Of a stretch of DNA of 64,000 bases, positions 47,465 to 64,000 are shown piece by piece. A program made the position numbers and the translations under genes. The stretch comes from Macrostomum lignano (taxonomy: Eukaryota). Numbering within the stretch: position 1 is the stretch's first letter; each line of letters opens with the position of its first letter. Location of the stretch: the NCBI GenBank assembly GCA_002269645.1, contig NIVC01000481.1:186001-250000 (forward strand), given 5' to 3'. The notes beneath the pieces were generated by a model. It did no database searches, was not told the origin of the DNA, and saw only the letters and a program-made list of their open reading frames with translations.

Positions 47465-50400
47465 TCAATCGAAGTCTCCGTCATCGTATCTGCCTCGGCT
47501 GTTCTGTCGAGAGCTGCCTGATCTTTTCTGCTGCGACTTGAAGCTGTCTGAAATTGTTGCAGAAATTAAAGCGAAGCAAAGTTTCATTTCTGCTTGAAAT
47601 TGTAGTGCAACTGATGTTTTGCATCCGTGCTAGATTCCCAGTTGCTAGGCCAGCATCCCAGATCCTCAGTTGCTTGGCCTCCAGCCTCTCAGATCCCCAG
47701 ATCCTATCCTAGCCTCCCAGATCCTCAGTTGCTATCCTAGCCTTCCAGATCCTCAGTTGCTATCCTAGCCTCCCAGATCCTCAGTTGCTATCCTAGCCTC
47801 CCAGATCCTCAGTTGCTATCCTAGCCTCCCAGATCCTCAGTTGCTATCCTAGCCTCCCAGATCCTCAGTTGCTATCCTAGCCTTCCAGATCCTCAGTTGC
47901 TATCCTAGCCTTCCAGATCCTCAGTTGCTATCCTAGCCTCCCAGATCCTCAGTTGCTATCCTAGCCTCCCAGATCCTCAGTTGCTATCCTAGCCTCCCAG
48001 ATCCTCAGTTGCTATCCTAGCCTCCCAGATCCCCAGTGGCTAGGCCAGCATCCCAGAGTATTTACGCAACCTCAAAATGATTGATCACTTCAGCAAGATC
48101 AGCGCAGCTGCCCCAGCTCACTTCTAGACTCCTGAACTATGCTGACAAACTCGTTAGTCATCTTTCGGGTCAAACGTTTGCCCGCCCCGGCAGACTTGGC
48201 GGCCTTGTCTACCATCTCTTTGACCTCGTCTGGTGACAAGTCTGTCAGAGCTGTCAGCTGGCCAAACAGATGCTCTCGCTGCTTCTGAAATGATAGAGGC
48301 AAAAATACTGGTGGATTTACATGTAGGTTTTGTTTTCACTTCAGCAATCATGATTCGCTTTCACTCTAAGAGTTTTATTTAGCTTGTTGAATCGCTGTAG
48401 CAACCTTAACATAACAATAATGATCCACCCTTAAGTGTGATCTAAAAATAGCAGCCAATAGGATCCATTCTACAGAGCCGAAAATTGATCTAAAAATAGC
48501 AACCAATCCGATCCATTCTACCCCCAGAGCTGCGAACGCTGTTCTAAAAATAGCAACCGATCCGATCTATTTACGATAGCCCAAAACTGTTTGAAAAATA
48601 GCAATTAGTCAGTTATCAATGGCATCTCTGTGATTAAAAAGCGGTTAAAAGCAGTTAAATTTGGCCTTAATAAGCCAATAGCCAAAACTAATGAAACTGG
48701 CATAGCATTATTACTCACATCGAGCTCGGCTTTCAGCTCGTCCTCCATTTCTCTGTCGAGCAGCTCCTGCTCTTTGCGCAATTCCATTCGCATCTCTTCG
48801 TTGATTTCCAGCATGGAATTTCTGTACTTGGTGTCAAGCACAGAGTCCATTACAAATTTGGCCATGCGGCTGTAAAAAGTAAATTATTTAGTGTTTGTTT
48901 TGGATATGCACGAACTGTCATGCCCTTCACCTGACACCCATAATGAAGTCTCTGACATTCAACGCGACACCCAGGCATCTTGACAACCAGACATCCTGAC
49001 ACTCAGACATCCTGACACCCAGGCATCCTGACACCCAGGCATCCTGACACCCAGGCATCCTGACACCCAGGCATCCTGACACCCAGACATCCTGACACCC
49101 AGGCATCCTGACACCCAGACATCCTGACACCCAGGCATCCTGACACCCAGACATCCTGACACCCAGGCATCCTGACACCCAGACATCCTGACACCCAGGC
49201 ATCCTGACACCCAGGCATCCTGACACCCTGGCATCCTGACACCCTGGTATCTTGACACCCAGACATCCTGACATCCAAACATCCTGACATCCAGACATCC
49301 AGACATCCTGACACTCAGACATCCTGACACCCAGACATCCTGGGTAGATCCTGAATCAGCCACTGACCCGTGCCCGCTGGCCTTCAGCGCTTTGATAGAC
49401 TTGTCCTCCTCCTTGTCGACCTCCTCCTGAACCCGGTCCCGCCTGTCCAGCTTCCGCCGCTGCAACTCCTCGGTCAGCTGGCGATCCTGATGACGCCGCT
49501 CGTGATCCAACTGCCGCTCCATCGCCGCCACCTGGTTGTTGTAGCTCTGCAGCACCTGGTCGAGTCCTTGGACATCGCCAGAGCGGAGCCGACCCTTCAG
49601 CCCGTCCTGCAGCTGGATTTCCAGCTCTTTTAACACTTTTTCCTGCTCCGTTATCGCCGCGTGCCGCCGCGCCCGCCCAGTCTGGAGGCGTCCAATCACG
49701 GCGCTCATGTGGGTCTCCTGGGCCCGGAGGGCGGACTCGGTTTCGCGCGCCATCTCGTCGCGAATCTGGGCGAGGCCATTGCGCCTTTCCAGCTCCAACT
49801 GTTTTTTGTTCTCGTCCAGCTTGCGATTGAGCTCGGCGTCCAGTTTGTCCAGGTCGCCGCGTCGCTCGTCGTCTATGGCCAGTCGAGCGTCGTGAGCCTC
49901 CTTCTTGAGGCGATCAGCCTCCGCGCGGCGCTGAGCGAGCTTTGCCTCAAGGCTGGCCTCCTGCTTGTGACGACTCAGCTGCAACACAATTAGTTTGTAG
50001 TGGATGCGTGCTGTCTACTCATATTTCTGCCTGATAATTTGCATGCGACTAACATTAGTCAATTAGAACGGGCTTTCTCAGTTGGATTGGATTGGTTGAT
50101 ATTTTTAAAACAGGCTTTCTCAGTTGGATTGAATTGGTTGCTATTTTTAGAACAGGCTTTCTCAGTTGGATTGAATCGGTTGCTATTTATAGAACAGGCT
50201 TCTCAGTTGGATTGAATTGGTTGCTATTTTTAGAACAGGCCTGCTTTCTCAGTTGGATTGAATTGGTTGCTATTTTTAGAACAGGCTTTCTCAGTTGGAT
50301 TGAATCGGTTGCTATTTATAGAACAGGCTTCTCAGTTGGATTGAATTGGTTGCTATTTTTTACAACAGGCTTTCTCTGTTGGATTGGACTGGTTGCTATT

Positions 50401-53400
50401 TTACAATAGACTACCTTAGATTTGATTGGTTGCTATTCTTGGAACGGACTTCTTAAGATTGTAAGGGTTGCTGTTTTTAGAGTGGAGTTCCTTTGTTGGA
50501 TCGGACTGTTGCCAATTTTAGATTTGAATTTCTTTGCCAATCGGACTGTTGCTATTTTAAGAAAAGTCTGGCCAGGCGAATCTATATGTAAAGGATGATC
50601 GGGTTTTTTGTTTTTTTAGCATATCGAGTATGTTTTTAAGCCTAAAAACCGTAGTTTTAAGATAGTTAAAACTATTTAGCACCCACATGAAGATTGTTGG
50701 TCACAGCCTGCATGTTCCTGTCGTGCTCTTCAAGTATCTGCCGTCTAGTATTCTCGTCCAGGTCAACCTGGTACACAAGCGCTTTTCTGAGCACCACCTC
50801 TTGGTTTCTCTTCACGCTGTTCAGTTCCGCCTCTTCAGCCTCCTTTGCTGCGGCCAGGCGGGCCTGCCGCTCGCTAAGCTTCTCCTCCAATCGCATCGCT
50901 TGTCGTTTGCGCTCGGCTCGTTTCTCTCCTTTGAAGATAAAGGTTAATAATTATATGATAAATTAGAGTTGCTTATCAAGCAAAAATCACAGACAGAATA
51001 ATTAAATAGAAGCAGTGACGCGTCCAGAGAGTGGTCAAGGAAAATAGGTCAGAACTGTGGACAACGAACCAATCTATACGGGGATTAGCTGACTTCTTTG
51101 GATCCGCATCGAAAACTCTGTCCGAGAATAAAAGTACACAGGATCCGCATCGAAACTTCGTCTGAGAATAAAAGTACAAGAGCTCACTTCTAAACCGATC
51201 GGTCTGATGCCTATGATCCGCCAGCATCCGCTGCAGCTCCTCATCGGTGGCCGCCAAGCCCAGCTGCTTGATGGCCGCCTCGTCCACCTTGGCCTCCTCG
51301 TCATCCTTCGTTTTGGCGAGGTCGCGCCGGAGCTGATCCAGCTGACGGCATTCGCTGTCGTCCAGTTCAGTGGTGGCTTCGTTTTTAAATCGACTTGTCT
51401 CGGCCAGGGCTCGTTCGAACTCGTCCAAGAAGCTGTCCGGATCCGTGATGCTGCCGGTGTCCACCTTGGCGGCCAGGCTCCGCTGCGGTTGAGCAGCCTC
51501 AGCGTCGGCTTCCGTCAGCTTCTTGCGTCGGGCCTCCAGCAGACGCTGGTGCAGAGCCTCGCGCTGGCTGAGGTAACCTGTTGGTTGGGTTGGGCGTTTT
51601 ACCAGTTCCTCTTCCACTGGAAGTCGGGAGTTCGATTATCGACCAACTCGGAACAATTTGTGTTCTTTAACAAGACCTTTCAACTCTGGATTGCTTCAAA
51701 GTGGGTCGATAAAGACCCGAAAAGGACTCCTCCAGTCCTTGGACTGAACAGCCGTACGCAGCCTTCAGATGCGCCGCGCAATAGCTGCAGCTGAGCTGTC
51801 GGTTGCACATCTGGCCATTTTTGCAGGCGTAATCAATTATTATTAGTATTAATTACACTACGTTCATCCGTCTTAAGCTTTGAAGACCCTTAAGGATAGT
51901 TGCCGTCAAATCACTGTGCAGATTTGGTATACATGTAAGGATGACATGCTGAGACAAACAGTTCAAAGACACGCTGAGACAAACAGTTCAAAGACAAACT
52001 GGGACAAACAGTTCAAAGACACGCTGAGACAAACAGTTCAAAGACAAACTAGGACAAACAGTTCAAAGACAAACTAGGACAAACAGTTCAAAGACAAACT
52101 AGGACAAACAGTTCAAAGACACGCTGAGACAAACAGTTCAAAGACACGCTGAGACAAACAGTTCAAAGACAAACTAGGACAAACAGTTCAAAGACACGCT
52201 GAGACAAACAGTTCAAAGACAAACTGGGACAAACAGTTCAAAGACACGCTGAGACAAACAGTTCAAAGACACGCTGAGACAAACAGTTCAAAGACAAACT
52301 AGGACAAACAGTTCAAAGACACGCTGAGACAAACAGTTCAAAGACAAACTGGGACAAACAGTTCAAAGACACGCTGAGACAAACAGTTCAAAGACAAACT
52401 GGGACAAACAGTTCAAAGACACGCTGAGACAAACAGTTCAAAGACAAACTAGGACAAACAGTTCAAAGACACGCTGAGACAAACAGTTCAAAGACACGCT
52501 GAGACAAACAGTTCAAAGACAAACTAGGACAAACAGTTCAAAGACACGCTGAGACAAACAGTTCAAAGACAAACTGGGACAAACAGTTCAAAGACACGCT
52601 GAGACAAACAGTTCAAAGACACGCTGAGACAAACAGTTCAAAGACAAACTAGGACAAACAGTTCAAAGACACGCTGAGACAAACAGTTCAAAGACAAACT
52701 GGGACAAACAGTTCAAAGACACGCTGAGACAAACAGTTCAAAGACAAACTGGGACAAACAGTTCAAAGACACGCTGAGACAAACAGTTCAAAGACAAACT
52801 AGGACAAACAGTTCAAAGACACGCTGAGACAAACAGTTCAAAGACACGCTGAGACAAACAGTTCAAAGACAAACTAGGACAAACAGTTCAAAGACACGCT
52901 GAGACAAACAGTTCAAAGACAAACTAGGACAAACAGTTCAAAGACACGCTGAGACAAACAGTTCAAAGACAAACTGGGACAAACAGTTCAAAGACACGCT
53001 GAGACAAACAGTTCAAAGACAAACTAGGACAAACAGTTCAAAGACACGCTGAGACAAACAGTTCAAAGACAAACTAGGACAAACAGTTCAAAGACACGCT
53101 GAGACAAACAGTTCAAAGACAAACTGGGACAAACAGTTCAAAGACAAACTAGGACAAACAGTTCAAAGACAAACTAGGACAAACAGTTCAAAGACAAACT
53201 AGGACAAACAGTTCAAAGACACGCTGAGACAAACAGTTCAAAGACACGCTGAGACAAACAGTTCAAAGACACGCTGAGACAAACAGTTCAAAGACACGCT
53301 GAGACAAACAGTTCAAAGACACGCTGAGACAAACAGTTCAAAGACACGCTGAGACAAACAGTTCAAAGACAAACTAGGACAAACAGTTCAAAGACACGCT

Positions 53401-63506: not shown

Positions 63507-64000
63507 GTATAGTTCCTTTATCAGGCATAAACAAATATTTCTTGTCGTCAAAGTTCAAATACCAGCTGTCACAGTCACAGAGTCACAGACATCGGTTACA
63601 GTCACAGGCATCCGTCACAGTTACATGTATTGAAATCATTTTTTAGTTGATTTTTTAACATGAAAAAAGTTTTCTTAATACATTTGCGGAAAACAAACCC
63701 GGAAAAAACGCAGGAAATAAAATCGGAAAACAAACCCGGAAAATAAATCCGGAAAGTAATAATTCTATCTGTAATGTAATCAATCTTTTATTGAAAATAA
63801 TAGAGTCAATACATTAAATGAGCTTCATCACAGATCGTTGACAAATACGGTGCTATAATTGAAACAATATAAAATGGAGGTATTCATTTTTTTATTTCGC
63901 TTCGAAACTATTTTGCACTGTTGATTTTTTGTATCTGTCAGAGCACAGCATGCTTAGTAAACAATGGATGCTTGAGAAACAATGGAATCAATAATCTGCC

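Follow-up and report, generated by a model that had tools for sequence, protein, structure and literature searches.

The DNA analysed here is a 64,000-nt stretch of the flatworm Macrostomum lignano (contig NIVC01000481.1 of assembly GCA_002269645.1, positions 186,001–250,000 of the forward strand; hereafter, the window). Its final part, from position 47465 to 64000, contains two divergently transcribed genes: one on the minus strand, running from 58219 to 47465, and one on the plus strand, starting at 59505 and extending past the end of the window. It is quite likely that the two correspond to the M. lignano orthologues of EVC (minus strand; a product of 951 amino acids, aa) and EVC2/limbin (plus strand). 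Bases 4220–30755 of the locus named L001 (same contig and assembly) are 100% identical to window positions 64000–37465, and the flatworm-like genome guessed at in the initial annotation was thus correct.

The minus-strand gene (BOX15_Mlig021650g3; 47465..58219) has 12 exons, all joined at canonical GT-AG junctions. Its spliced translation is identical to a public protein, P0001, which is labelled 'hypothetical protein'. The initial annotation of this DNA had proposed a 919-aa protein. A first model, made by joining stop-free stretches at GT-AG junctions, reproduced this length with 10 exons, and the gene proved to be real, but two small exons (57759–57685 and 57584–57525) had been missed. In addition, the acceptor of exon 7 had been wrongly placed at 51616; P0001 and P0002, its 69%-identical Macrostomum relative obtained from a sequencing-run assembly, both place it at 51577. 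The model was corrected against these two proteins. Exon 1 (58073..58219) contains the ATG, a short extracellular N-terminus, a transmembrane (TM) helix and a Cys-rich juxtamembrane stretch (CFICFWIFCCYRR); it matches the TM region of EVC2 profiles weakly. Exons 2 (57685..57759; FKKRSFNMMCLDKLHCEQAEVRCFE), which is conserved in P0002, and 3 (57525..57584; QFGRLKCMEDPKDETLAEKE) are those absent from the 919-aa model. A low-complexity linker and the beginning of the helical region lie in exon 4 (57220..57455). Exons 5 (56474..56878), 6 (55753..56045) and 10 (48719..48869) are spliced as in P0001, while conserved islands are found in exons 7 (51188..51577; TDPDSFLDEFERAL), 8 (50687..50928; DENTRRQILEEHD) and 11 (48122..48284; GQLTALTDLSPDEVK). 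The most conserved part of the family maps to exon 9 (49368..49978), which includes VIGRLQTGRARR and LQSYNNQVAAM. Exon 12 (47465..47547) ends with the stop codon.

The protein encoded starts with an extracellular N-terminus of ∼20 aa, followed by a TM segment at about residues 20–48, the Cys-rich stretch, the low-complexity linker and a cytosolic region of ∼800 aa. Residues 139–935 are almost wholly helical in an AlphaFold2 (AF2) model, which is of low confidence (mean pLDDT of 59). The N-terminal TM segment described in the initial annotation was recovered, and its long coiled coil corresponds to the modelled helix.

A profile built from P0001 and P0002 was run exhaustively with HMMER against 1.84 billion cluster representatives. 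It matched 69 proteins, all of the EVC/EVC2 superfamily; the 30 that were named were all EVC/EVC2 family members, and no generic coiled-coil protein was found among them. No unrelated family gave a better match, a notably clean outcome for a query with a coiled coil. The matches fell into two classes. Those of the EVC class, with 870–990 aa, aligned to the query from end to end (E = 1e-74 to 1e-32) and belong to molluscs, an annelid (Owenia), a nemertean, a brachiopod, a priapulid, a hemichordate and echinoderms. In the databases the majority are called 'trichohyalin-like'; the Holothuria member is labelled 'Ellis-van Creveld syndrome protein', and those of Bulinus and Patella carry the Pfam domains EVC_N (PF28139) and EVC_C (PF28141). 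An N-terminal TM segment was present in 15 of the 16 EVC-class proteins checked. Proteins of the EVC2 class, with 1100–1700 aa, were matched through their C-terminal halves only (E = 1e-21 to 1e-5). Their matches to Pfam EVC2_like (PF12297) exceed the cutoff, and the proteins of Branchiostoma, Haliotis and Strongylocentrotus go under the name limbin/EVC2.

Hidden Markov models (HMMs) specific for each class were then built without flatworm sequences. P0001 scored 473.5 bits on the EVC-class HMM, covering positions 28–911 of 930 with an alignment that begins at residue 23 of P0001, versus 158 bits on the EVC2-class HMM. True EVC2 proteins scored 181–255 bits on the EVC-class HMM. In a neighbour-joining (NJ) tree the EVC2 class was separated from a group formed by the EVC class and Macrostomum in 173 of 200 bootstraps, with Macrostomum lying on a long branch. 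Further, a precomputed Pfam match to EVC_C (PF28141) is recorded for P0001 and for its two paralogues in M. lignano. The initial assignment agrees with the outcome of the family search, the scores on the two class HMMs, the split in the NJ tree, the EVC_C match and the protein architecture, and the identification of the minus-strand gene as an EVC orthologue is strongly supported by these sequence comparisons. The four EVC motifs pointed out in the initial annotation fall in islands conserved across the invertebrate EVC-class proteins; conservation across the class is lacking for the 'DPANILVELKLLE' stretch. As a side observation, the EVC class includes proteins from the annelid Owenia (P0006) and the ecdysozoan Priapulus (P0021); according to PMC9695228, EVC was not found in two transcriptomes from annelids.

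The ATG codons of the two divergent genes, at 58219 and 59505, are separated by 1,286 bp, in line with the 1.3 kb initially indicated. The 1,285-bp intergenic region (58220..59504) is presumed to act as a shared bidirectional promoter, a role suggested by the loci described in PMC3052239. Head-to-head EVC and EVC2 genes were reported by Blair et al. in 2011 for vertebrates, amphioxus, sea urchin and Lottia, the two genes having been lost from arthropods and nematodes (PMC3052239). Inspection of other genomes also showed an EVC-class gene head-to-head with an EVC2_like gene in Bulinus truncatus and Patella caerulea. The 5′-to-5′ spacing is 2.75 kb in Bulinus and 1.16 kb in Patella, compared with 1.29 kb in M. 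lignano, 1.75 kb in mouse and 2.86 kb in human. The arrangement seen in M. lignano is the ancestral head-to-head arrangement of bilaterians. Two degenerate sites resembling the X-box recognized by RFX, with one mismatch each, were found in the intergenic region (58513–58526 and 58620–58633); the former is kept in all three M. lignano paralogues of the locus.

The plus-strand gene begins with the ATG at 59505. Its first three exons are well defined, while the later ones within the window are tentative. Exon 1 (59505..59915) includes the ATG, a signal peptide and the start of the ectodomain. The ectodomain continues in exon 2 (60917..61273), which has a DUF11-like 'GP..L...' motif and matches an HMM of EVC2 ectodomains with E = 2.9e-4, and in exon 3 (61738..61951). 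Exon 4 (62065..62166) is tentative, its acceptor being at either 62065 or 62101. A Ser/Thr-rich ectodomain exon was assigned to 63273..63506; the donor at 63506 is supported by P0106, and the acceptor is uncertain within 63248–63411. The signal peptide and the glycosylated ectodomain proposed initially are consistent with the signal-peptide-like start of exon 1 and with six N-x-S/T sequons in the first 327 aa, glycosylation being predicted from the latter. A single-sequence AF2 model of these 327 aa was unusable (pLDDT of 32.5).

Further exons of this gene, including those for the TM segment and the predicted cytosolic tail, lie beyond base 64000, and some could be read in L001 and in the paralogous locus L002. 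In L002 a shorter tandem-repeat intron allows more exons to be read before the next repeat, among them the TM exon 'SAGIVVLLFFVGLLIGAIVALLILVLWFCCLQCRVDPEAVPLVSKED', which is followed by a GTAAGT donor; 'SAGIVVLLFFVGLLIGAIVALLILVLWFCCLQCR' is likewise TM exon sequence of L002. The expectation that a TM segment would be found downstream of the window was thus borne out in the paralogue. The third locus, L003, ends earlier than L002. The annotated product of the L001 gene has 1721 aa and extends past both the window and L001. A likeness between the apparent post-TM stretch 'ICRFDSVLTVFLAFRGD' and 'DDSIVMVLALKD' of EVC2 was withdrawn, since the stretch follows the GTAAGT donor and is intronic.

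The identity of the plus-strand gene was analysed with an HMM made from the ectodomains of four EVC2 proteins (of amphioxus, a crinoid, a sea star and an urchin) that are either named as such or verified by Pfam. The exon open reading frames (ORFs) of the plus-strand gene matched this HMM colinearly; among 896 ORFs, the best E-values corresponded to the exon containing 'MQFTTTISH' (6.9e-6) and to the TM exon (6.5e-5). A spliced 766-aa draft of the ectodomain and TM segment scored 35.3 bits, while the best of 500 local shuffles reached 4.5 bits and the reversed sequence −16. The alignment of this draft continues through the 'RFTTT.SH' motif into the TM segment, and the family-specific motif 'MQFTTTISH...S..PA' matches 'LRFTTTLSH' of the sea-star and urchin EVC2 proteins. 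The annotated EVC2-like products of M. lignano have 1567 and 1721 aa, while the model of the copy named g1 is cut at 634 aa by the end of its contig. This indicates that the annotated models are properly spliced, so that 1567 or 1721 aa would leave ∼850–1000 aa after the TM segment. We infer from these product lengths a cytosolic tail of 850–1000 aa, as long as the EVC2 tails of amphioxus and echinoderms. The initial proposal of an EVC2-like gene therefore stands as regards the homology of its ectodomain and TM segment to bona fide EVC2 proteins, the downstream TM segment, the product size and the synteny with molluscs, and the gene is very probably EVC2/limbin on these sequence features; the proposed coiled coil would lie past the sequence that could be read.

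M. lignano EVC resembles the EVC proteins of vertebrates, echinoderms and molluscs in having a short extracellular N-terminus, a signal-anchor TM segment, a helical cytosolic region and a length of ∼950 aa. It differs from non-flatworm EVC proteins in its divergence (mean identity to them of ∼21%, and a long branch), and its two small Cys-containing post-TM exons, together with the 'GFLDPANILVELKLLE' stretch, are conserved within Macrostomum but cannot be aligned to other EVC proteins. The EVC2-like protein shares with amphioxus and echinoderm EVC2 a signal peptide, an ectodomain of ∼700–800 aa with predicted N-glycosylation, a furin-like motif, the 'RFTTT.SH' motif, and a TM segment with a Cys-rich juxtamembrane stretch. 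Its predicted length (1567–1721 aa) compares with 1458–1686 aa for the long form of amphioxus and echinoderms, relative to which it has the extra Ser/Thr-rich exon. In molluscs, by contrast, the TM segment of EVC2 lies at residues 209–243 and the ectodomain, of ∼200 aa, is much shorter than that of M. lignano; mouse Evc2, with its TM segment at 209–231 (PMC3052239), has a similarly short ectodomain. In terms of ectodomain size, EVC2 proteins range over ∼510–680 aa in amphioxus and echinoderms, ∼700 aa or more in M. lignano, and ∼180–240 aa in molluscs (P0029, P0035, P0040 and P0066 compared with P0033, P0037, P0039, P0048 and P0051). EVC2 ectodomains thus come in a long and a short form, of which the long one is probably ancestral. 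The furin-type basic motif in the EVC2-like ectodomain (NNNRARRAV; at ∼700–780 in L001, equivalent to window positions ∼67440–67520, and at ∼2600–2700 in L002) aligns with RRRRRKRQ, ARRRRV and RAKRQ of amphioxus, sea-star and crinoid EVC2. This suggests that the long-form ectodomains may be proteolytically processed.

The whole locus is present in three near-identical copies in the polyploid genome of M. lignano: g3 in L001, g2 in L002 and g1 in L003. Every copy keeps the head-to-head arrangement, the same neighbours and an intact 951-aa EVC ORF, with 5–6 substitutions each. Compared with the loci analysed by Blair et al. (PMC3052239), that of M. lignano belongs to a flatworm lineage outside that study, is triplicated, and contains a repeat array in almost every intron. 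These tandem arrays have different units, occur in both genes and vary in length among the three paralogous loci. In and around the genes they lie at 46649–47148, 47632–48057, 48966–49305, 50063–50402, 51943–55714, 56922–57216, 60036–60818 and 62638–62942. In EVC intron 6, for instance, a 25-mer is repeated 151 times over 3.8 kb, EVC intron 4 has a (TAC)98 microsatellite, and a 34-mer occurs 23 times in EVC2 intron 1; another array of ∼3 kb is found in an EVC2 intron just past the window. Downstream of EVC, and convergent with it, lies a gene for a PMCA-type plasma-membrane Ca2+-ATPase (Pfam Cation_ATPase and ATP_Ca_trans_C; L001 28132–30755, window ∼37465–40088), which is found beside EVC at all three paralogous loci. 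The G+C content of window positions 42001–46000 is 0.56, versus 0.40–0.46 around them. Outside the window, a 440-aa M. lignano protein (P0004; UniRef A0A1I8F615) corresponds to a divergent EVC-like fragment with 41% identity to residues 537–917 of P0001. Its degree of divergence sets it apart from the three near-identical copies; it could represent an older paralogue of EVC or come from contamination.

The vertebrate EVC and EVC2 proteins pair as a transmembrane heterodimer located at the EvC zone of the primary cilium, where it works downstream of Smoothened (PMC3052239; PMC10413113). EFCAB7-IQCE tethers this complex by way of the W-peptide of EVC2, whose EFCAB7-binding motifs are FV and RRKKN (PMC10413113). 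By homology with the vertebrate proteins, the two M. lignano products would be co-expressed from the shared 1.3-kb bidirectional promoter, and would form a heterodimer in the ciliary membrane by way of their helical cytosolic regions. The heterodimer might then serve as a scaffold downstream of Smoothened, promoting the dissociation of Sufu and Gli. Gene identity, architecture and synteny are what the present analysis demonstrates; ciliary localisation and participation in Hedgehog signalling in the flatworm would follow by analogy with vertebrates.

Several observations weigh against the picture of an EVC–EVC2 pair acting in ciliary Hedgehog signalling, some of them bearing on function and others on the identity of the genes. 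As to function, Rink and colleagues are said to have found in 2009 that Hedgehog signalling in planarians is independent of cilia, so the vertebrate mechanism may not transfer to M. lignano. The evidence from the X-boxes is weak: window-wide counts of such sites equal those expected by chance, and the intergenic regions of Bulinus and Patella contain one weak site and none, respectively. There is accordingly a fair-sized minority chance that the two genes are EVC and EVC2 orthologues by descent with no Hedgehog role here, acting for example in the membrane of the abundant motile epidermal cilia or as a non-ciliary scaffold. The planarian report would fit this, as would the length of the invertebrate EVC2 ectodomain and its furin-like site, which suggest an extracellular function beyond the vertebrate model. 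However, the retention of the pair hints at a link between cilia and Hedgehog signalling, and all three M. lignano copies are intact.

As to the plus-strand gene, the 766-aa draft gave no Pfam match, DUF11 included; a tblastn search of EVC2 proteins against the locus produced a single weak match, profile HMMs being needed to detect the similarity; the readable sequence stops before any cytosolic coiled coil or W-peptide; and the 69 HMMER matches include no EVC2-class protein of M. lignano. Moreover, two word-index protein searches with its exons missed the annotated neighbour proteins of 1721 and 1567 aa, the second search yielding only P0106, a garbled 424-aa UniRef fragment that was placed on no contig. 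Most likely the annotated proteins are absent from the collections searched, although a divergent tail is a possible cause. Taken on their own, these results would allow the gene to lie upstream of EVC by coincidence and to code for a secreted or adhesion-type membrane protein that has Ig/DUF11-like repeats and no relation to EVC2. We consider this improbable, as the colinear 35-bit match to the EVC2 ectodomain runs into the TM segment while none of the 500 shuffles exceeded 4.5 bits, the 'FTTT.SH'-type motif is shared with sea-star and urchin EVC2, position and orientation relative to EVC are identical in Bulinus and Patella, and the product length fits EVC2.

As to the minus-strand gene, no match to EVC2_like or to any other EVC model was obtained with the local Pfam library for the 919-aa model, P0001 or P0002. 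This is explained by the EVC_N and EVC_C models not being in that copy of the library, and by EVC2_like not reaching EVC. Pfam EVC_N is recorded for the Bulinus and Patella proteins, and none is recorded for M. lignano; a sequence search of the PDB returned nothing relevant. That the protein is a generic coiled coil with a purely compositional likeness to EVC, as misleading database names ('trichohyalin-like', 'CARD domain-containing') and the local Pfam result, a sub-threshold DUF1542 match only, could lead one to think, is effectively refuted by the HMMER search and the class-HMM scores, and runs counter to the end-to-end alignments, the conserved N-terminal TM segment and the synteny.

The identification of an EVC–EVC2 pair in M. 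lignano is useful rather than surprising, the bilaterian conservation of the complex being already established. The high significance attached to the pair in the initial annotation is not warranted: invertebrate head-to-head pairs, including that of the spiralian Lottia, were described in 2011 (PMC3052239), and the M. lignano protein was already public with its EVC_C match. In the literature searched, no paper mentioned EVC/EVC2, or a head-to-head pair of them, in Platyhelminthes. The results replace the labels 'hypothetical' and 'CARD domain-containing' (the UniRef name of P0001) that three M. lignano genes now carry, and show that many invertebrate EVC orthologues are mislabelled, with 'trichohyalin-like' in use for proteins of molluscs, a brachiopod, a sea urchin and a priapulid (mislabelled records: P0005, P0010, P0013, P0014, P0016, P0021 and P0001). 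They are of modest value for annotation and for evo-devo work. A bolder and rather doubtful proposal is that M. lignano, an early-branching rhabditophoran flatworm, keeps a working three-copy EVC–EVC2 module that couples Smoothened to Gli at cilia. Were this true, the reported cilium-independence of planarian Hedgehog signalling would be a loss within flatworms and not a feature of the phylum, and the long ectodomain with its furin site would reflect an ancestral extracellular function lost in vertebrates and molluscs. As M. lignano is described in PMC5173321 as amenable to transgenesis, the pair and its putative 1.3-kb bidirectional promoter provide a practical handle on the link between Hedgehog signalling and cilia in flatworms.

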